From the sequence record OP999027.1: a DNA stretch of 10,026 nt; one strand, written 5' to 3'. The translations under genes and the position numbers were made by a program. The stretch's first letter is position 1; every line of letters begins with the position of its first letter. The notes under the pieces were generated by a model, which saw nothing but the letters and a program-made list of their open reading frames with translations, was not told the origin of the DNA and made no database searches. Positions 1 through 8,239 of this stretch are shown in pieces.

Positions 1-246
1 CTGGCAAGGCCCAGAGAAAAGGCTGGAAACCTAGAATTCTAAAATGCAAGAAATGTGGCTTTACGCATGATAGGGACGTTATAGCAGCGTGGAATATTGC
101 TAAAAAATTAGATGTGAGCCTCATGCCCTGGGGCTCAAAGGGGGCCCATGACCCTTACGTGGAGTGGTCAGTGTCCATGATGAACCGTAAGGTTGAGGCC
201 CAACACCCCCTCCTAACTATGGGGTGACAAGGAAGATTGGGTTCAT
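1..246 (+). mobile_element. Right end of an IS200/IS605-family element
   Basis: tnpB 3' end; subterminal hairpin CACCCC(204-209)/GGGGTG(221-226); candidate terminus GGTTCAT at 240-246. The segment is visibly GC-richer (27/60 in 1-60, 36/60 in 121-180) than the flank. The exact last base is inferred. Confidence 0.8.
3..227 (+). CDS. tnpB: C-terminal fragment of IS200/IS605-family TnpB (RNA-guided nuclease), 5'-truncated by the window edge
   Basis: Frame 3, not in the ORF track, translates GKAQRKGWKPRILKCKKCGFTHDRDVIAAWNIAKKLDVSLMPWGSKGAHDPYVEWSVSMMNRKVEAQHPLLTMG*. CxxCG followed by DRDxxAAxNI is the TnpB zinc-ribbon end plus RuvC-III motif. TGA at 225-227. Confidence 0.92.
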   Translation, partial: GKAQRKGWKPRILKCKKCGFTHDRDVIAAWNIAKKLDVSLMPWGSKGAHDPYVEWSVSMMNRKVEAQHPLLTMG

Positions 247-266
247 TACAATAAGCTCTTATGATG
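116..266 (+). ncRNA. Putative TnpB omegaRNA (reRNA): scaffold to about 246, guide about 247-266
   Basis: Stems GAGCC116-120/GGCTC132-136, GGGCC142-146/GGCCC197-201, CCTTACG153-159/CGTAAGG186-192, CACCCC204-209/GGGGTG221-226. ATGAACC180-186 is complementary to GGTTCAT240-246 (pseudoknot geometry). The 5' boundary is uncertain. Confidence 0.7.
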
Positions 267-1242
267 CACTATTATCTTTTTCTAACTTCTCCTTCTTCTC
301 CTTTGCCTCATCCTTCATCTTTTCGATTGCATTTACTACATTCATAATCTCATCGGCATCGGCACCGCTTTTAATGCCTAATTTTATGACCTCTAGTTTA
401 GTATTGACGAGGCGCGCATGTGAATCATTTCTTTCTTTTTTCCCCTCTAGTTCTTTCAACTCCTTTTGTAAGTTATCAAGTGATTCAACAATTTCGTTTA
501 TATGTTTTTCTTTTGGCGCGTCTTGATTTTTCTCTTCATCCTTAGTCTCGTCAATTTTTATGTCGCCCGCTTCAACCTTTTTTAGATACAAAATTAACGC
601 AACGCGAAAAACCGTAGACATCGAAAATCCGTTCTTATGAACGTAGTTAAGGAAACGTCTCTTAAGGTCCCATGGTATCATTGACCTAACGACTATATTT
701 CCCTTATACAATTCATCCTTATTTTCTATCTTATCCTTAATTATATAAGCAAGATCAAGGTGCCCATAATGGTCTAAAAACCACTTTATTACGTCAGGTA
801 TGATGTCCTTAATATTCTTTGGGGTAAATTGTACTATATTGGTAAGCTTTCTATATAGCTCATTACTGATGGAAAAATCAATTTCCACCTTCTCATCCTT
901 TCTCATAGTAACATCGTAAAGATAATCGGTAAGTGCTGCAAAAACAACTAAATCTCGAGAGCTCACTTTATTCTTTTCTACATACTCGTTTAGCATCTTT
1001 ACCATATCGTCTGACAATGAAACAGTAATTATATCCTCAAGCGGTGGTGAATTAGCAGTCAGCTTTTGTTCTAACTTCTTTATTTCCCGTAGCACCGCCC
1101 TGAAGCTTTCATTTTTATGCTTATCAAAAAATATCGATAAGGCCCTAGTGACTATTAGATCTTGATTTTCATTTCGTTTTTCTTGTGCTTTTCTCATCAG
1201 CTCTACTAAACCACGTGGTAATCTAAATGTCAAGTAAGGCAA
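259..1242 (-). CDS. Protein with four tandem ribbon-helix-helix (RHH) domains and a C-terminal coiled coil (~327 aa)
   Basis: RHH-like units: YLTFRLPRGLVELMRKAQEKRNENQDLIVTRALSIFF; IITVSLSDDMVKMLNEYVEKNKVSSRDLVVFAALTDYL; VEIDFSISNELYRKLTNIVQFTPKNIKDIIPDVIKWFL; IVVRSMIPWDLKRRFLNYVHKNGFSMSTVFRVALILYL. Start re-called to TTG 1242 (AGGTGG RBS, directly after the upstream stop at 1253); the ORF track extends it to 1317. Confidence 0.82.
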   Translation of the reverse strand: MPYLTFRLPRGLVELMRKAQEKRNENQDLIVTRALSIFFDKHKNESFRAVLREIKKLEQKLTANSPPLEDIITVSLSDDMVKMLNEYVEKNKVSSRDLVVFAALTDYLYDVTMRKDEKVEIDFSISNELYRKLTNIVQFTPKNIKDIIPDVIKWFLDHYGHLDLAYIIKDKIENKDELYKGNIVVRSMIPWDLKRRFLNYVHKNGFSMSTVFRVALILYLKKVEAGDIKIDETKDEEKNQDAPKEKHINEIVESLDNLQKELKELEGKKERNDSHARLVNTKLEVIKLGIKSGADADEIMNVVNAIEKMKDEAKEKKEKLEKDNSAS

Positions 1243-1252
1243 GATGGGCCAC

Positions 1253-2062
1253 CTATGTAGCGAACAGATAATTTTCAGTCTTTGAGGCCGGTGCTGCAAG
1301 CCGCAGAGCCAATTCATCCTTATGCTTTATAGCGAAGATTTTAGACTTTCCGCTGCGTATCTGATCTTGATATGTTTTGCTCAATTCTTCTGCATAACTC
1401 TTTAACACAGCTTCTATATCATTATTATAATCAGCCAGGCTAACTTTCTTTTCCTCAAAAAACCAATTATTGCTTCCTAACATACCAGCAGCAACTAAGT
1501 CCATTTTCGTATCTGCATAAAATACGTCAGCTTCGATAAACGTATCATTACCGTCTATAGGTATAGTGTATCTTTTTAGCTTCTTCATCGCCGTATTTAT
1601 CATATTCATCTTAACCTCCTTATCATGCTCAACATAAGCCAAAGGATCATAGGTAAAGCCAGCTCTTTCGATAAAGTCATTGAAGACATAAATTAGTGGG
1701 GATAAGCCAGACATTATTATTATCAATAGCCTATCTTTAGCCGCATCTAGGTCAAACAAATACTCGCTGTTATGATCGACATTTATTTCAAAAATGAAAG
1801 TGAACATTATTTTTAGTTTTTCTTTGTTGGCAGTGTTATATAGTCTAACACTTAGGTTTATCGCATATGTTGTTTGATTAATCTTTGATATATCTTTCTT
1901 TATGCTAGCTATTTTATAGTTGTACAAGGCGAAAGGCAATAGGCCTTTCTTATATAGCGCGAGACTGTTTCTTAACACGTAGTGTACAAGATCTTCTAAA
2001 GTCTTTTCTTTTACCTTTAAGTGGAGTTGTGTTTTTTCGGGTTCGGATTGGATCTCAAACAT
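1253..2062 (-). CDS. Hypothetical protein (269 aa) with a probable single N-terminal RHH and an unassigned alpha/beta C-terminal region
   Basis: ATG with GGCGGT RBS downstream of a TATA box. QLHLKVKEKTLEDLVHYVLRNSLALYKKGLLPFALYNY aligns with RHH2 of the neighbouring protein (L..YV..N......L..F.AL..Y). Remainder not recognised. Confidence 0.75.
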   Translation of the reverse strand: MFEIQSEPEKTQLHLKVKEKTLEDLVHYVLRNSLALYKKGLLPFALYNYKIASIKKDISKINQTTYAINLSVRLYNTANKEKLKIMFTFIFEINVDHNSEYLFDLDAAKDRLLIIIMSGLSPLIYVFNDFIERAGFTYDPLAYVEHDKEVKMNMINTAMKKLKRYTIPIDGNDTFIEADVFYADTKMDLVAAGMLGSNNWFFEEKKVSLADYNNDIEAVLKSYAEELSKTYQDQIRSGKSKIFAIKHKDELALRLAAPASKTENYLFAT

Positions 2063-2233
2063 TTTACCGCCGATTATTACTGTAGTTATTTAAGCTTATA
2101 AAACTTTCTATCATGAGCTTCATAGCCAAATACGTAAAATTACGTGTTAACATAACAGTATAGTCACAAAAACATAAGGGGAAAAAGGGACTTCACCAAA
2201 ATTGTAGAACTGACATTACAATTCTGTAATTTT
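2060..2233 (-). promoter_or_regulatory. Intergenic cassette copy 1: oligo-T terminator, 36-bp inverted repeat, 14-bp palindrome, BRE/TATA, leader
   Basis: Minus strand GAAAG-TTTTATAAG (2095-2108) is a BRE+TATA. Perfect palindrome ACGTAA-AA-TTACGT 2132-2145; IR AAAATTGTAGAA-N12-TTCTGTAATTTT 2198-2233. About 80% identical by hand to 7197-7340. Confidence 0.8.
2178..2190 (-). terminator. Pyrimidine/oligo-T terminator candidate for the RHH operon ending at 2243
   Basis: Minus strand TCCCTTTTTCCCC about 55 nt after the stop codon; same relative position as the T7 tracts in cassette copies 2 and 3. Confidence 0.5.
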
Positions 2234-2242
2234 ACCAAAAAT

Positions 2243-3487
2243 TTACAAGAGTAGAATTTTAACATTATCTTTATCGATTTCCTTTAGGTAACCGTGATTC
2301 TTAAATGATTCGAACAACTCCGTTGTATTTCTGACAGATTTTATTTTCTTCATCGCGTCTTGGATATCTTGCTTCTTTACTACTGTTCCTTTTTTTAGCC
2401 CAGGATAAAGGCCCGTCTTTAAATCTTCCAAAATTCTTTGCCATACTACGTAAGTTTTAATATCAGACTTTCCAGAGAATCGTTTCTTTGTCCATTGTCT
2501 CAATATTTTTGCTATAATTTTGCCAACTTCAAGCTTAATCGCACTTTCATTAACGCTTAGCTTATAACCATGATGATACCTAAGTATGACATATTCTTTT
2601 AGCAAGTTATAAAGTCGTCCTGATAATGGTACACTGACAAAACGACTTGCACGTCTAGGTTTGGGTTTATTATTTTGTTTCGGTGGGTCATTAGGTGGGT
2701 CATTTGCTTCTTCATTTTGTATAACCTTCTGTTGTTCTGCAGTACTTCCATTCAGCAAATTCAAATGATTCATAATTGCGAGGCGAATAATAGCGCCTTT
2801 AGAAACTAGCGTCTGTTCCGAAATTTTTTCTAATTGTAGTAAAACGCGTATAGGCAACTTTATAGGGAGCTCTTTTTGAGGACCCTTTCCAGAAAATAAG
2901 TTGCTAGCAGTCTCGTGCAGCCTTTTGATTTCCTCAGAGTTATCATCATATTTTTTCAAAAACTCATCAATAGCCTCCCTTATAAGGTCACTTATTGTTA
3001 TGCGTTTTTTTATTACTTCATTCTCAAGGAGTTTGTGTAACTCGTTACTATACTTAAAGCTTGTCTGAACCAACACGTTAAGATCTCCGAAATCTGAAGC
3101 CTCTTGTAGTTTCGTTTTATGCCTTAGCTCATCCCTAGCTCTAGACAATATTTCTTTTACTTTTTCTATATAAGGCCTTTTCTGTCTATCATCAAGATTA
3201 AGGAAGTTATTTATCATGCTCCAAACTATTCTCATAATCGAAAATCCTCTTGAGTTGACATAAATGCGGATCTTCTCCATAGCATCTTCTGGTAATGTTA
3301 AAGAAATTCTTTTTAACTCTTCTTTATTATAATTGGGTGGTAGTGATTCTATAGAGTCTGAAGGATTTTCGGCAAATGCAATAATAGCCGCCCTCATCAA
3401 AAGCCCACCAGGTACACCAAGCCGTTCTGCCTCTTCTACTACTTTATCTAATAATGTTTCAGGAATGATGAAGGTCAGAGACTTCAT
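2243..3487 (-). CDS. Multi-RHH protein (four clear RHH, a possible fifth) with Pro-rich linker and C-terminal winged-helix-like domain (~414 aa)
   Basis: RHH units start at SLTFIIP, RISLTLP, QTSFKYS, ELPIKLP, and possibly FVSVPLS. The C-terminus KKQDIQDAMKKIKSVRNTTELFESFKNHGYLKEIDKDNVKIL has a helix-helix-beta-hairpin wHTH pattern. The first ~250 aa are collinear with the 270-aa neighbour. ATG 3487 preferred over GTG 3496. Confidence 0.85.
   Translation of the reverse strand: MKSLTFIIPETLLDKVVEEAERLGVPGGLLMRAAIIAFAENPSDSIESLPPNYNKEELKRISLTLPEDAMEKIRIYVNSRGFSIMRIVWSMINNFLNLDDRQKRPYIEKVKEILSRARDELRHKTKLQEASDFGDLNVLVQTSFKYSNELHKLLENEVIKKRITISDLIREAIDEFLKKYDDNSEEIKRLHETASNLFSGKGPQKELPIKLPIRVLLQLEKISEQTLVSKGAIIRLAIMNHLNLLNGSTAEQQKVIQNEEANDPPNDPPKQNNKPKPRRASRFVSVPLSGRLYNLLKEYVILRYHHGYKLSVNESAIKLEVGKIIAKILRQWTKKRFSGKSDIKTYVVWQRILEDLKTGLYPGLKKGTVVKKQDIQDAMKKIKSVRNTTELFESFKNHGYLKEIDKDNVKILLL
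2682..2704. repeat. 11-bp direct repeat (period 12) encoding NDPP-NDPP in the linker
   Basis: GGTGGGTCATT at 2682-2692 and 2694-2704. Confidence 0.8.
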
Positions 3488-3492
3488 TCTTA

Positions 3493-4305
3493 TCACGCTA
3501 CCAGTGTTGTGTTTGCTTTGCTAACACTTTGCATAACCTCTTGATGTACGTCAACCAAGTTCAGATATCTCACAATTGCAAGGCGAATGAGCATAGCCCT
3601 AGACACATTAATCTTATCAGCTATTTTAGTTAGCTGTAATAGCATATATGCAGGCACTTTTAAGGAACAATCCTTAGCCGAAACTTCGATATAATACAGA
3701 TGTTTAGCAGCCTCATATAGCTTTTCGATTTTCTCAAAGTTATTACCATATTTCTGCAAAAGATCATCAATAGCCCTTCTTACAAGTTCACTTGCCGTTA
3801 TTCCTCTTTCACGTACCTCTTTTGCAAGTAGTTTACGTAAGTCATCTAGACATCTAAAACTTATTGGAACCAGCCGATAAGGTTCTTTTGAAGCAATATT
3901 TTCCAGTAATTGAAGCGAATGCTCTTTGTCTCGTTTTCTCTTTCTCTTCTCTGTTATCTTTCTTACCTCTTTTTTGATATAGATTAGTTTTTGCTCATCA
4001 CTTAAATTAAGAAAATCGGCTACCGTCCTCTCCGCTACTTTTCTCGCCGGAAGGCCTTTTGCAGCAGCGTAAGAATAAATTTTTTCTAAAGTGTCTTTTT
4101 GCAATGCTAAACAAACTTTTGTTATTTCTTTTCGTCCAGACCCGCCGATTGCGTTTGGTAATGGTTTTATAGAGTCTGGCGGGTTTTCTGCAAACGTCTG
4201 AATTGCAGCACTCAGCAAAAGTGTTCGTTTTACATTAAAACGCGACGCTTCTTCATTTACCTTGTTAAGTAAAGAGATACGTATTGAAAAGCATAAATAT
4301 GCCAT
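3493..4305 (-). CDS. Four-RHH protein (~270 aa), paralog of the N-terminal part of the 414-aa protein
   Basis: RHH units at YLCFSIR, KVCLALQ, PISFRCL, CSLKVPA. Motifs shared with the neighbour include FAENP.DSI..LP, FLNL.D.QK..YI, LLQL.KI and IRLAI...LNL. ATG 4305 follows GGGTGA RBS (track start GTG 4314). Confidence 0.87.
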   Translation of the reverse strand: MAYLCFSIRISLLNKVNEEASRFNVKRTLLLSAAIQTFAENPPDSIKPLPNAIGGSGRKEITKVCLALQKDTLEKIYSYAAAKGLPARKVAERTVADFLNLSDEQKLIYIKKEVRKITEKRKRKRDKEHSLQLLENIASKEPYRLVPISFRCLDDLRKLLAKEVRERGITASELVRRAIDDLLQKYGNNFEKIEKLYEAAKHLYYIEVSAKDCSLKVPAYMLLQLTKIADKINVSRAMLIRLAIVRYLNLVDVHQEVMQSVSKANTTLVA

Positions 4306-4316
4306 TTTTATCACCC

Positions 4317-4637
4317 TTACACTAGCTTGAAATAGGCTGCTAATGCAGTCCGTATGAGGTCGCTCTTATTCGTTCTTATTTTTTCTGCTACAATATCTAG
4401 CTGAGTGTTGAGACTCTCAGGAAGCCTTATGGAAATTACGTACTTACCTGAATAGGGAGAAGTCTTTTTGCTTAACTCCATTATCTCATCATTATTATGC
4501 TGTAAAAGCCTCATCACTGCCTCCTTTATAATTGCGGTTTTTGTGGTGTTAGTTTTTTCAGCCTCTTCCTTTAGCTTTAAAATAAGGCTAGATGCACACT
4601 TGAAGCTTATCTGTTTTAAGGGTTCTTTCTCTAACAT
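4317..4637 (-). CDS. Two-RHH protein (106 aa), CopG/Arc-like single-chain tandem RHH
   Basis: KQISFKCASSLILKLKEEAEKTNTTKTAIIKEAVMRLL and YVISIRLPESLNTQLDIVAEKIRTNKSDLIRTALAAYF are both textbook RHH patterns. ATG 4637 with GGTGGT RBS (track start GTG 4655 lies in the leader). Confidence 0.9.
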   Translation of the reverse strand: MLEKEPLKQISFKCASSLILKLKEEAEKTNTTKTAIIKEAVMRLLQHNNDEIMELSKKTSPYSGKYVISIRLPESLNTQLDIVAEKIRTNKSDLIRTALAAYFKLV

Positions 4638-4790
4638 TTTACCACCAATTAACACTGTAGTTTTTCTAGATTAAAAAACTATCTATCATGAGTTACATAA
4701 AGAAAACCGTAAAATCTTGTGATATTATGAAACGATGATCACGTAAAATGATTGTTAAAAAAAGGAATTTGCCAAAATTGGTGAATTCTG
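4635..4790 (-). promoter_or_regulatory. Intergenic cassette copy 2 (distal inverted repeat truncated by the upstream gene end)
   Basis: TTAAAAAACTATCTATCATGA at 4671-4691 is identical to 7202-7222. CGTAAAAT, GAAACGAT, A7-GG (4757-4765) and CCAAAATTG are collinear with the other copies. Leader 4635-4662 matches 2060-2087 at 24/28. Confidence 0.75.
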
Positions 4791-4791
4791 T

Positions 4792-5364
4792 CTAGTTATT
4801 CATATTATCATTAATTTTCATTATAATATTCGCTATCGTTTTAAAGGCTAATTTGCCATAAGGATAAAGTTCGATTTGAATGTTTTTAGAAGCCTCATAA
4901 ACTATCTTGTAATGGTGTTTAGGCAAAACCGCAACTATTCTTTTATGGATATTGTGGGCATGAGAGAGTGCAATGGAAAGTAGTTTGATGAACTCTTGTT
5001 TTTCTTCTTCAGTCATCAAAGAAGGAGGATAATCATAAGAATTGAAAGGGTAACAGTTCTCTAATTCTCTAGGGACTAACAACATCGGCTCAGAGACAGA
5101 ATACACTTGAACCTTATCCTCAAGTTTATACTTTCGTAGCAAGGAATAAGCTAGTTTGTGTGTGGCTGACTTATTATAAGGCTTAACTGATGTACAAGGT
5201 AATAAAAGCGCTATTTCTTTTTTGGAATACCAGTTGTTGAGAAAGTACTCATGCCATTTTTTTACCACAGGATGTTGGAATGGGTCAAAGCCAGGCTTTT
5301 TTATTATTTTTTCGCCTGAGCCAAGATACTTCTCTAAGGGTTCACAGCCTTCTACATAACTCAT
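4792..5364 (-). CDS. Stand-alone ArcS-like catalytic domain (DUF5591-type; archaeosine synthase C1 region), no PUA domain
   Basis: PCTSVKPYNKSATH (aa 56-69, nt 5158-5199) matches the ArcS signature PCx3KPYx2Sx2H exactly; followed by VSEPMLLVPRELE..YP...YDYP, typical of this domain. Only 190 aa. Confidence 0.85.
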   Translation of the reverse strand: MSYVEGCEPLEKYLGSGEKIIKKPGFDPFQHPVVKKWHEYFLNNWYSKKEIALLLPCTSVKPYNKSATHKLAYSLLRKYKLEDKVQVYSVSEPMLLVPRELENCYPFNSYDYPPSLMTEEEKQEFIKLLSIALSHAHNIHKRIVAVLPKHHYKIVYEASKNIQIELYPYGKLAFKTIANIIMKINDNMNN

Positions 5365-6205
5365 TTATTTCCGCCTCTGGGTCTGTTATATTATGAGAGT
5401 ACTTAATAAGAGGGTGATCTGCCTCATACTCACTATGTAGCAAGACCCATACATTAATAAATGATCTATCTATCCAATTGTCAAACCTTATAGGAAATGG
5501 GTAGTGAGTCTTCTCTAGAAAGTCCTTAAGTGATTCAAGTTCATCTTCACTAATTCTTCTAGCACCCCAACTTATTTTTCTCTCTCCAACATACCTTTCT
5601 CCTTTTCCAGGCAATAACACCATACCATGTATTGCCTTTACTCTATAAGTTGATGTGTCAACACTATCAGCATCATAAAAAACCTTTCTCATGAAAGGAG
5701 AACCAGCACCTAAAACGTGAATTTTACCCTTCCATTCTTTTCTAACAAGGCGATACATCGCAACTGCTAGCTTTTGACTGGCTACCTTATTAAGAGATGG
5801 TGGAACTATCCCACCAAATGCGATATAATCCGTATATTGAGAGTAGAAATCAATAGCCTTTTTAATGCTTTCAACATCATAAGCGTGAATGACTGGTATT
5901 ATATTCTTATCCAGTTTCGTGTATAAGTACTCAAAATGCTTGAAATTAAGCTCTGAAGGCTTTTCGCAAGGTGTTGCAGGTATATCGAGACTAATGTAAT
6001 AGTCTGCATCAAGCCTCTTGTATTTATCTAATACGGCATCTACACTAATCTGCATTTTTTTAACCATTATTTGATAGCCACCAGAATCTACCCACGTTTC
6101 ATTTTCCCATTCTACAAAGTCCCACACAAGCTGATTAATCATCAGTGGTACACCTAACTCCCATAACTTCACCCTACTATCAGGCAAACCTAAAATAATC
6201 TTCAT
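5342..6205 (-). CDS. tRNA-guanine transglycosylase-fold protein, DpdA-like (candidate DNA 7-deazaguanine transglycosylase)
   Basis: TGT motifs DSGGYQ, SLDIP, PVIH, FGG, HVLGAGSP and DSVDTST, with both catalytic Asp positions present. No CxCxxC zinc site and no PUA domain; His where tRNA TGTs have QG. ATG 6205 preferred; the track start GTG 6247 overlaps the upstream gene. Confidence 0.85.
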   Translation of the reverse strand: MKIILGLPDSRVKLWELGVPLMINQLVWDFVEWENETWVDSGGYQIMVKKMQISVDAVLDKYKRLDADYYISLDIPATPCEKPSELNFKHFEYLYTKLDKNIIPVIHAYDVESIKKAIDFYSQYTDYIAFGGIVPPSLNKVASQKLAVAMYRLVRKEWKGKIHVLGAGSPFMRKVFYDADSVDTSTYRVKAIHGMVLLPGKGERYVGERKISWGARRISEDELESLKDFLEKTHYPFPIRFDNWIDRSFINVWVLLHSEYEADHPLIKYSHNITDPEAEINELCRRL

Positions 6206-6224
6206 ATCCTTACCATTTTTCTCC

Positions 6225-6677
6225 CTATATGTTAAATACCATTTCACGTATGGTTTTGATTGTATTTCTTACAAATCTCGCCTTCTTCATCGTCAGTGGG
6301 GTCTGATTCAGTTTTAGCTGAAGATGCTGAATAAAGTAGAACATCAAGATTCTGTGAGCCTTTTTTGCCCTTTCATTTTCGTATTCCGGAACGACGTAAA
6401 CTACATTCAAGGCGAGTACATCTCTCCAGCTTTCTATGTGAACATACATCTGCAGAACTTCCTGGAGATGAATGAGATATTCCTGAATTTTCGTATTATC
6501 TTCTAATGTTCTCAAGATTTTTGCTAACATGTAGATGATCTCGTCCAATGTTGCATTCTCTGGATTCTCAATACCAAGCTCTTGCAAAAATTGGAGGCCT
6601 TCTTGATCTTGCGCCACTTCTTCCTTTATGCTCTCCCACGATTCGTTACTTAACCCCTCCGGAACGATATTTATCAT
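6225..6677 (-). CDS. Hypothetical all-alpha protein (150 aa), tandem paralog of 6693-7163
   Basis: Roughly half of residues identical to the neighbour by hand alignment (e.g. YVVP.Y..ERAKKAH..LMFY.IQ.LQ). Both are preceded by GG-rich RBS + AAAAAC-ATG-ATA. Confidence 0.85.
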   Translation of the reverse strand: MINIVPEGLSNESWESIKEEVAQDQEGLQFLQELGIENPENATLDEIIYMLAKILRTLEDNTKIQEYLIHLQEVLQMYVHIESWRDVLALNVVYVVPEYENERAKKAHRILMFYFIQHLQLKLNQTPLTMKKARFVRNTIKTIREMVFNI

Positions 6678-6692
6678 GTTTTTCTTACCCCC

Positions 6693-7163
6693 CTATCTAT
6701 TCTGCGTATTAAATATCATTTCACGCAAGCTTTCAATAAATTTATCTATAAACTCCATTTTTTCAGTAAATAATCCAGGTCCTTTTATAGGTTGTTGTAA
6801 GTACTGAATCAAGTAAAACATTAGTAACTTGTGTGCTTTTTTTGCTCTCTCGTCCTTATAGTCAGGTACGACGTAAATCATAGCCAACACATTATCCTCA
6901 TTCTGCCAATCCTCATTGAATTCTGAAACATACGTCTGTAATGATGCTTTCAATTGTATTATATATTTTGTTTTAGCTTCATCACTTTCTAAGGTATTTA
7001 ATAACTTCGCTATCATACGAACTATTTCATATCTTGTTGCCTCTGCAGGGTCCTCAAGACCTAGTTCTCTCAAATATTGTATAGCTTCTTTATCTTGTGC
7101 AACATTTTTCTTTATATATTCCCAGCTTATTTTACTTATTCCTTCTGGCACAATATCTATCAT
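6693..7163 (-). CDS. Hypothetical all-alpha protein (156 aa), first gene of the TGT/ArcS operon
   Basis: ATG with GGAGGTGG RBS directly downstream of cassette copy 3; paralogous to 6225-6677. Confidence 0.87.
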   Translation of the reverse strand: MIDIVPEGISKISWEYIKKNVAQDKEAIQYLRELGLEDPAEATRYEIVRMIAKLLNTLESDEAKTKYIIQLKASLQTYVSEFNEDWQNEDNVLAMIYVVPDYKDERAKKAHKLLMFYLIQYLQQPIKGPGLFTEKMEFIDKFIESLREMIFNTQNR

Positions 7164-7196
7164 GTTTTTCCCACCTCCATTTATCTTTTCTCTTTT

Positions 7197-7340
7197 TTAG
7201 CTTAAAAAACTATCTATCATGAACTCCATAGTCAAAAACGTAAAATTATGTGTTAACACGAAACGATAGTCAAAAAACTTGAGAGGAAAAAAAGGGGCTT
7301 CTCCAAAATTGTAGAACTATCATGACAATTCTACAAATTT
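7197..7340 (-). promoter_or_regulatory. Intergenic cassette copy 3
   Basis: 54/62 identity of 7197-7258 to 2091-2152 and 36/43 of 7298-7340 to 2191-2233. IR AAAATTGTAGAA(7305-7316)-N12-TTCTACAAATTT(7329-7340); near-palindrome ACGTAAAATTATGT 7238-7251; T7 tract (A7 on + at 7287-7293). Confidence 0.82.
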
Positions 7341-7377
7341 GCTACCATCACGAATTTTTCTCGTACTAATGAGATTT

Positions 7378-7462: not shown

Positions 7463-8239
7463 TCAAATCGAGTCAATAACACCACGTGAATTAATGACGC
7501 ATTTTATAATTCCATCCCTATTAACTCCTTCAATACATCTTTGAGATATAAACTCTATATTGTGATTTTTAAGTACATCATCTAAAGTTATATACTCATT
7601 TCTTATGAAATTCTCGTGTATTATGCAATTTGGCCCAGCATATCTAAATAATCTTGGGTGAACTTTCTTTACTTCCTCTAACATTCTCCACGCAATTGCT
7701 CTAATTTCCCATTGAGCTCTTGAACAGAGCCTTAGGGAAAAGAAATTATATAATTCCCTAGCATTCATACTTACTACGATGTTTGTATTAACAGCGTTTG
7801 GCAAAACATAACGCGCATCCTCTTCGGGTATTCCGCTCTTCAACAATTCATAATAAATTTCATAAGCATTATTGTAAGCTTTGTTAACTAGCTCATGAAC
7901 ATCCCTCTTTTTAATGCTAATAGGTATTATTGGCTTATAATATTCATCTATTGGCCTAGCAAACCTATGAGACATTTGCGTATAAGAGGCTATTCTATGC
8001 CTAACAAGCTGATGAGACGCAACCCTAGAAATTCCCTCAATAGAAAAAGTATAAACTGAATGCTCTAACACAGACCAATACCCATGTAGAATTGCATCCC
8101 TAATCCATGTCTCAATCTCGTCATCACTCATTTCTTTTTCATGATAATCCCAACCTTTCCTACTCCTACTCATTTTAGCCGCAATCGCTACTACCTTTTC
8201 ACCATCAGGTGAATATGATACTAGTCTGACTATCATCAC
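7463..8239 (-). CDS. thyX: Flavin-dependent thymidylate synthase ThyX
   Basis: ThyX motif RHRxxSxxxxSxR ([13 protein letters not shown]), plus SVLEH, ARYVLP and [12 protein letters not shown]. Start GTG 8239 or ATG 8236. Confidence 0.97.

Follow-up and report, generated by a model that had tools for sequence, protein, structure and literature searches.

The ribbon-helix-helix (RHH) proteins CopG, Arc and MetJ work through cooperative arrays of dimers, long operators being reached by separate dimers, and both their dimers and their dimers of dimers are non-covalent. A gene cluster of Sulfolobus tengchongensis spindle-shaped virus 4 (STSV4), analyzed here within a stretch of 10,026 nt (the window; GenBank OP999027.1, contig 1 of the draft genome), encodes proteins with the same fold and sequence signature. 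In these proteins, however, the assembly resides in one polypeptide and is asymmetric, the units that we call A to D being unlike within each pair (A unlike B, C unlike D). RHH assembly appears to be built into single chains that have two or four domains, or six in the sister viruses STSV1 and STSV2. STSV4 was isolated from a hot spring at Tengchong, and its 11 contigs do not add up to a complete genome (PMC10101205). Each of the five genes of the cluster is labeled "hypothetical protein" in GenBank. The window is syntenic with STSV1 open reading frames (ORFs) 15-26 at ~83% DNA identity, and STSV2 matches part of it, with ~85% identity over 46% of the window.

TraY of the F plasmid (Protein Data Bank [PDB] 9f0x, 9f0y and 9f11) resembles the STSV modules in having two RHH domains in one chain that form a pseudo-dimer. 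In the F relaxosome, three such single-chain pseudo-dimers line up over bp +61 to +90 as a train, covering ~30 bp (PMC12117103). The TraY copies are separate chains joined by protein contacts, whereas two predicted pseudo-dimers in STSV4, and three in STSV1 and STSV2, are covalently linked. TraY is 11-15% identical to the 414-aa protein of the cluster in Foldseek alignments, with no detectable homology, and the STSV genes lack a relaxase or oriT context. AvtR (AFV6 gp29, PDB 4hv0), a single-chain two-RHH regulator of a crenarchaeal virus, corresponds to one STSV module and is the nearest functional precedent; the structural match is weak (TM-score 0.59, E 1.3, 14% identity). AvtR autoregulates and protects ~100 nt by oligomerizing along DNA (PMC5569661). 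AvtR and the other di-RHH proteins of Sulfolobales viruses carry one module per chain, to which the STSV proteins add four- and six-unit chains, a probable winged helix and a coiled-coil-like tail. According to the structural model described below, the STSV chains belong with TraY, AvtR and VirC2 as an architecture, not as a homologous family; neither TraY nor AvtR appeared in Pfam or PDB sequence searches.

The aCcr1/SIRV2 gp21 family, like the STSV chains, consists of RHH proteins of Sulfolobales and their viruses, and its members are small cell-cycle regulators. Unlike the multi-RHH STSV chains, aCcr1 is a single RHH domain of 58 aa that dimerizes, and binding of a 9-bp aCcr1-box is a mark of its clade. 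STSV2 has a number of divergent proteins in the gp21 family outside the aCcr1 (SiL_0190) clade, whose role in the cell cycle "remains to be determined," and proteins with more than two RHH domains were described as common among the Bicaudaviridae homologs (PMC9976892, 2023). No aCcr1 homolog was found in STSV2 or SMV1, yet both enlarge host cells (PMC9976878). These two papers leave the factor for the STSV2 division block undetermined, and a December 2025 paper on this block names no viral factor. RefSeq notes on STSV2 record paralogy ("PHA02938 superfamily"), and a text search of the literature for four-RHH or tandem-RHH proteins returned no characterized chain with more than two units. The multi-RHH architecture is uncharacterized, but it had been noticed in sister viruses and is not a discovery of this work. 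What is new is the arrangement of units as A-B-C-D and C'-D', the recognition of six-unit fusions as such, the contrast of constant with variable positions in the readout, the appended winged helix and coiled-coil-like tail, and a promoter cassette shared between operons.

RHH units in four genes

Fourteen RHH units are present in four of the five genes, two in the 106-aa protein and four in each of the 270-, 414- and 327-aa proteins. All five genes lie on the minus strand, as follows.

4317..4637, minus strand: 106-aa di-RHH protein, assigned module C'-D'; RHH units at 4482-4619 and 4320-4445
3493..4305, minus strand: 270-aa four-RHH protein, assigned A-B-C-D; units at 4168-4305, 3991-4128, 3739-3873 and 3544-3675
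2243..3487, minus strand: 414-aa four-RHH protein; units at 3350-3487, 3182-3319, 2936-3073 and 2744-2878
3092-3190 and 2627-2749, minus strand: helical connector and disordered NDPP linker of the 414-aa protein, from the AlphaFold2 model
2477-2641 and 2246-2461, minus strand: weak orphan RHH-like segment and probable winged helix in the C-terminal part of the 414-aa protein
1253..2062, minus strand: 269-aa protein without RHH, phrog_28589; syntenic with STSV1 ORF25 and STSV2 gp24
259..1242, minus strand: 327-aa four-RHH protein; units at 1108-1242, 907-1035, 757-894 and 565-693
262-537, minus strand: Lys/Glu-rich, coiled-coil-like tail of the 327-aa protein, from composition and heptad occupancy

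A preliminary description of this DNA had placed the genes and given their sizes correctly, including the start of the 327-aa protein at 1242, and had counted about 15 RHH domains over all five; four genes with 14 units stand, and the 269-aa protein drops out. The 327-aa protein begins with a TTG at 1242, which follows GGTGG, lies 10 nt past the stop codon that ends the 269-aa gene and is matched in STSV1 by the ATG of ORF26. The 327-aa call is better than the 352 aa given in GenBank.

The RHH identity of the four proteins, proposed in the same description, was upheld by Pfam, by profile matches and by the beta-alpha-alpha units of a structural model. Scores against Pfam RHH_1 were 38.7 bits for the 106-aa protein, 27.8 for the 270-aa protein, 39.7 for the 414-aa protein and 19.6 for the 327-aa protein; the curated cutoff of 20.5 is exceeded by the first three and narrowly missed by the last. 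The match of the 106-aa protein (E 8.6e-10) falls in two stretches and is accompanied by one to RHH_3, while the 27.8 bits of the 270-aa protein come from unit C, its unit D being weak. Halves 1-112 and 114-235 of the 327-aa protein matched a di-RHH profile over ~95 columns (hhalign, E 5e-10 and 5e-12). When compared with the PDB, this di-RHH profile matched CopG (1b01, E 3e-4, with unit D aligned) and the Sulfolobus plasmid RHH protein ORF56 (2k9i). A beta-alpha-alpha unit of ~45 residues was found by the curated Pfam models of the RHH superfamily (RHH_1, RHH_3, RHH_5), the di-RHH profile and the structural model together, and direct reading of the unit alignment revealed the canonical Ser/Thr/Lys-rich turn ahead of helix B in most units.

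A scan for each repeat with a hidden Markov model (HMM) of the unit, a check proposed in the preliminary description, gave 2, 4, 4, 0 and 4 units in the 106-, 270-, 414-, 269- and 327-aa proteins; this HMM was made from STSV4 units, and the count is circular for STSV4 and independent for STSV1, STSV2 and a metagenomic contig. Single-unit Pfam scans, which covered eight units, a putative fifth unit of the 414-aa protein and the C-terminal domain, gave useful matches for units B and C only. Because per-unit Pfam support is uneven, the number of units was taken from the model and from comparison of profiles.

For the 414-aa protein, four or five RHH domains had been suggested, and four are retained. 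The putative fifth unit (residues 283-337) has a strand-plus-helix-A-like sequence, and the unit HMM covers its strand and helix A only (E 0.4); the counterparts in relatives gave E 0.003-0.8. The region had no match in the single-unit Pfam scan, its best hhalign comparison with units 1-4 (E 0.003) was out of register, and it was modeled with low confidence as two helices without a strand. This is the appearance that an unpaired RHH would be expected to have in a monomer model, and the region is best described as a weak, unpaired candidate. The single RHH domain suggested for the 269-aa protein was rejected, as there was no Pfam RHH match and the hhalign probability was ≤2.1% against every RHH profile. 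In its structural model, of which one in five was confident, a helix at residues 7-31 precedes alpha/beta domains; Foldseek returned no match at E≤0.001 and weak NTF2/SnoaL-like matches at E≥0.1.

The two-RHH module

When aligned to the HMM, the units fall into four positional types, A, B, C and D. The four-RHH chains follow the order A-B-C-D, and the 106-aa protein consists of C'-D'. Any two di-RHH pairs can be aligned in register across 91-101 columns, the exception being pair 1-2 versus pair 3-4 of the 270/414 family; by profile-profile comparison units 1-4 of this family are mostly in register, and similarity links odd units to odd and even units to even. The alignment of the 106-aa protein with units 3-4 of the 270-aa protein, from which the preliminary description had argued, was recovered by BLASTP (29% over 112 residues, E 3e-11) and hhalign (E 1e-14), with its ISF.C-type motif visible.

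Full-length profile matches and synteny with STSV1 ORF20-26 and STSV2 gp17-25 place the proteins in a single STSV multi-RHH family, with identities of 62-83% to the STSV1 orthologs. The 270- and 414-aa proteins are 39% identical over 262 residues, and the matches of the 270-aa (E 2e-110), 414-aa (E 2e-119) and 327-aa (E 1.3e-77) proteins to phrog_9615 put all three into one PHROG family. The 106-aa protein matches phrog_876 (E 1.5e-22).

That the two-RHH module is the unit of expansion, as the preliminary description had proposed, is supported by the in-register pairs, and its strongest backing is the fusions seen in relatives. Chains of 353-361 aa in STSV1 and STSV2 carry six RHH units, as in-frame fusions of a four-RHH protein with a 106-type protein. 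Their genes are as follows.

10040-12199 of the STSV1 locus (L002): six-RHH genes ORF21 and ORF22
4890-7048 of the STSV2 locus (L003): six-RHH genes gp18 and gp19

Counterparts of these genes are lacking in the STSV4 contig, which may reflect collapse of the draft assembly. With respect to a loss through recombination between 106-type modules, comparison of the N- and C-terminal halves with their STSV1 and STSV2 counterparts gave no clear breakpoint in identity. RHH genes number 4 in STSV4, 6 in STSV1 and 8 in STSV2. By the unit HMM, the STSV1 locus holds 26 units, the STSV2 locus 32 and a divergent 3.2-kb metagenomic contig 10. The preliminary description had known of no described locus this dense in RHH domains; it is surpassed by two syntenic loci, those of STSV1 (2005) and STSV2 (2013), and chains with more than two RHH domains had already been called common, as noted above.

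The metagenomic contig (JAVYRF010000149.1 of GCA_038730885.1; L004, 1-3237) carries genes for a 226-aa four-RHH, a 114-aa two-RHH and a 249-aa four-RHH protein together with an unrelated 263-aa gene, and the product called on the 249-aa ORF, of 232 aa, shares 32% identity with the 270-aa protein. Because of this divergent cluster, the multi-RHH arrangement is seen to reach beyond STSV1-4. In an 83-aa metagenomic protein (P0026), the beginning of unit A is fused to the end of unit D, both from a 270-type protein, a chimera that points to recombination between RHH repeats in natural populations. Of 5.8 billion clusters and 1.84 billion representatives covered by two large protein searches, the first set yielded 15 proteins and the second 6. 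In a tblastn search of 50,697 phage records, the 270- and 327-aa queries matched STSV1-4 only, and the 106-aa query gave additional weak, partial matches (E 0.005-0.009) in Sulfolobus spindle-shaped viruses. The family appears, from these searches, to be narrow in distribution.

An AlphaFold2 model of the 414-aa protein had a mean predicted local distance difference test score (pLDDT) of 72.5. Its beta-alpha-alpha units number exactly four, and their block means of pLDDT are ~70-91.

Unit 1: strand 2-9, helices 10-23 and 27-40
Unit 2: strand 58-65, helices 67-80 and 84-96
Unit 3: strand 139-146, helices 148-161 and 165-180
Unit 4: strand 205-212, helices 213-226 and 230-241

DSSP assigns all four unit strands as strand in the monomer, and they must therefore pair within the chain. 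Two units would be intertwined, with their strands in one antiparallel ribbon; an adjacent RHH pair as a single-chain pseudo-dimer, the intrachain pairing anticipated in the preliminary description, is supported at the level of prediction by the strand assignment and by superposition on TraY. The predicted template modeling score (pTM) of 0.33 means that the model does not fix the arrangement between modules.

In the F-plasmid relaxosome, chains E, F and G gave the best experimental Foldseek match (TM-score 0.61-0.76, root-mean-square deviation 2.2-3.4 Å over ~100 columns); these chains are taken to be TraY from their lengths and from the three TraY copies described for that structure. Single-chain Arc, AvtR and VirC2 were also among the matches. 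The model of the 106-aa STSV2 protein superposed with a TM-score of 0.83, and the best predicted viral matches were the STSV1 and STSV2 paralogs and di-RHH proteins of ~100-120 aa from many Sulfolobales viruses. Module 1 is linked to module 2 by a helix of ~30 residues, and residues 247-287 are disordered. Residues 343-411 follow the order helix-strand-helix-helix-strand-strand, and residues 343-414 have a winged-helix topology with weak Foldseek matches to the winged helices of MCM8 and Rpa2; the C-terminus is probably a winged helix. In the 327-aa protein, Lys and Glu together make up 36% of the tail, whose hydrophobic residues show heptad-like spacing, with heptad occupancy of up to 0.75.

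Three outward-facing strand positions per unit were set by alignment to CopG. In units A and B, entropy at these base-facing positions was 2.0-2.9 bits, compared with 0.75-1.2 bits in the helices of the same units, in samples of 11-19 units. At base-facing positions of unit C, 15 of the 19 sequences have Ser and 12 have Lys, and the last such position of unit D was usually Lys or Arg. The hydrophobic core positions and helices of the units were conserved. This pattern fits a constant C-D module combined with a diversifying A-B module.

Possible roles of the multi-RHH chains

We think it reasonably probable that the four genes form a virus-specific family of modular, sequence-specific DNA-binding transcription regulators. 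An adjacent RHH pair would fold within one chain into a pseudo-dimer, like TraY and AvtR, and would insert a two-stranded beta-ribbon into one major groove. Chains with two, four or six units (six in STSV1 and STSV2) would represent one, two or three covalently linked readers and, with the geometry of TraY, would cover ~10, 20 or 30 bp in place of non-covalent cooperative trains of RHH dimers. The C-D module, with its kept base-facing Ser and Lys/Arg, probably reads a common motif, and the A-B module, with its variable base-facing positions, is probably what makes the paralogs differ in specificity. The winged helix, the possible orphan RHH and the coiled-coil-like tail may add contacts or self-association. 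Each of the two operons described below would be expected to be autoregulated through their shared promoter cassette, and the targets would most likely be viral promoters and possibly host promoters. The family offers a natural system in which to ask how RHH modules combine to read long asymmetric sites.

Several points weigh against a family of sequence-specific regulators. Whereas domain content, module grammar, predicted fold and shared cassette are results of this analysis, DNA binding is something that we infer for every member of the family, as are site length, the specificity split, autoregulation and targets, and the conserved blocks of the cassette are candidate operators only. The structural evidence comes from one modeled RHH chain, the 414-aa protein, built on an alignment of 17 sequences with the low pTM given above, and the pairing of units 1-2 and 3-4 rests on strand assignment and Foldseek alignments. 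In the single-unit Pfam scan, unit A of the 270-aa protein had no match and several units scored E 0.03-0.04. The variability of A and B could reflect relaxed constraint in place of diversified specificity, and the entropy sample was small and included orthologs, so that its sequences are not independent.

The train of TraY acts at oriT, and omega and ParG act on repeat arrays. By comparison with these proteins, the STSV chains might serve as covalent RHH trains that coat, bend or bridge the viral genome at an origin, at a centromere-like array or in packaging, and not in promoter regulation. The nearest experimental structure is a DNA-bending TraY train, paralogs are many and carry up to six RHH units per chain, the 327-aa tail and the 414-aa winged helix could bridge or oligomerize, and positions 561-1120 of STSV1 are annotated as a region of repeats and stem-loops. 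However, such an architectural or segregation role is unlikely: scans of the window proteins revealed no ParA-type ATPase or relaxase beside the cluster, and no short tandem repeat array, as would accompany a centromere-binding protein of the ParG/omega type, was found in the window. In addition, diversified base-facing residues suit specific readers better than generic coating proteins, and the cluster is away from the structural genes, lying in STSV1 amid nucleotide-metabolism and DNA-modification genes outside the structural module.

The borderline score of the 414-aa protein against Pfam CopG_antitoxin (PF12441; 28.2 bits, cutoff 28), together with the existence of viral antitoxin mimics in related viruses such as SMV1 gp44 (PMC11065993), raises the idea that the RHH units are antitoxin-like or protein-binding modules that neutralize host toxins or defense regulators without reading DNA. 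We regard decoys of this kind as highly unlikely, since the domains retain the features of DNA-binding RHH units, neither a toxin partner nor a toxin-binding tail is present, no toxin family and hence no adjacent cognate toxin gene of a type II system was found among the neighbors, and the RHH genes are absent from the predicted anti-defense list for STSV1 and STSV2 (PMC11065993). It is more improbable still that the genes are for the most part redundant copies that arose by tandem duplication and recombination, individually of little function and in some cases decaying. The varying gene number, the 83-aa chimera and the strong variability of the A and B readout positions would suit such redundancy, but all frames are intact, lengths are conserved, ortholog identity is 62-94% across four viruses and several metagenomic contigs, the core positions and helices are conserved, and ribosome-binding sites are kept at the junctions.

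A further conjecture, which we hold to be quite doubtful, is that the chains are the factors by which STSV-type viruses, having no aCcr1 homolog, shut down host cdv/ESCRT transcription and so produce giant virus-factory cells. A constant C-D module would anchor on a shared motif while a fast-evolving A-B module retargets the paralogs, giving a programmable array of 4, 6 or, with orphan fifth units pairing between chains, 10 RHH per complex. In the absence of an aCcr1 homolog, the family is an obvious candidate for the factor behind the STSV2 division block. Because the genes, the candidate operators in the shared cassette and host genetic tools exist, this role is directly testable.

Promoter cassettes, operons and neighboring genes

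A conserved promoter/leader cassette of ~190 bp is present in the window in three direct-repeat copies, ahead of the genes for the 106-, 269- and 156-aa proteins.

4638..4822, minus strand: cassette copy 1, heading the 106-270-414 operon
2063..2247, minus strand: cassette copy 2, heading the 269-327 operon, with a degenerate 18-bp palindrome at 2207-2224
7164..7353, minus strand: cassette copy 3, outside the RHH genes, heading an operon of the 156-aa and 150-aa genes

The cassette carries a TATA box and a ribosome-binding site in addition to conserved blocks. Copy 1 contains ATTTTACG, CTCATGATAGATAG, the TATA box TTTTTTAAT and the Shine-Dalgarno sequence GGTGG, and it aligns with the cassettes ahead of STSV1 ORF20, STSV2_17 and STSV2_22. 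The same cassette precedes STSV1 ORF17, ORF20 and ORF25 and STSV2 gp12, gp17, gp22 and gp24. The window has three occurrences of a block ATTTTACGT..CTATG, and the complete STSV1 genome likewise has exactly three, which precede ORF17, ORF20 and ORF25. The RHH genes are organized in two operons, 106-270-414 and 269-327, and because of the shared cassette both appear to share their regulation with the operon that the 156-aa gene heads. By analogy with the arrangement of STSV1 ORF17-19, this third operon probably extends to the TGT-like and DUF5591 genes.

An 18-bp palindrome, GAATTGTCATGACAATTC, is present in perfect or nearly perfect form in the cassette copies other than that of the 106-aa gene (window 2207-2224 and 7314-7331). 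Further sites lie at 18596, 25381, 30954 and 41919 of locus L005; all these sites, those of the window included, are intergenic, just past gene ends and upstream of promoters, and the palindrome could be an operator or a terminator hairpin. Assignment of the cassette to the "early/anti-defense" promoter class of PMC11065993 was considered and rejected, as ORF17, ORF20, ORF25 and their STSV2 counterparts are not in its list. The cassette sequence GATAGATAG resembles the SSV1 F55 operator ATAGATAGAGT, which is offered as a lead only.

Beyond the RHH genes, the 150-aa and 156-aa proteins (6225-6677 and 6693-7163, minus strand) are tandem paralogs within a direct repeat, D4, and have no family match; STSV1 has one copy (ORF17). 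The minus strand at 4792-6247 and 7463-8239 encodes a DUF5591 protein (Pfam E 3e-20), a 301-aa protein and ThyX. The 301-aa protein had no Pfam match here and is homologous to an STSV1 gene named queuine tRNA-ribosyltransferase by RefSeq. The set of DUF5591, TGT-like and ThyX genes may point to what we presume to be DNA modification of the 7-deazaguanine type, comparable to that of phage DpdA-type enzymes.

Ser/Phe/Leu-rich frames on the plus strand at 4468-4674, 6916-7200 and 224-526 run antisense to Lys/Glu-rich genes and are likelier to be shadow ORFs than genes; those at 4468-4674 and 6916-7200 are carried as coding sequences in GenBank. At 3-224, plus strand, frame 3 encodes a TnpB/Cas12f-like C-terminal end (Pfam Cas12f1-like_TNB, E 1e-7). 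The contig begins within this IS200/IS605-type element, which is convergent with the 327-aa gene; at the same place STSV1 has ORF27, a membrane protein.

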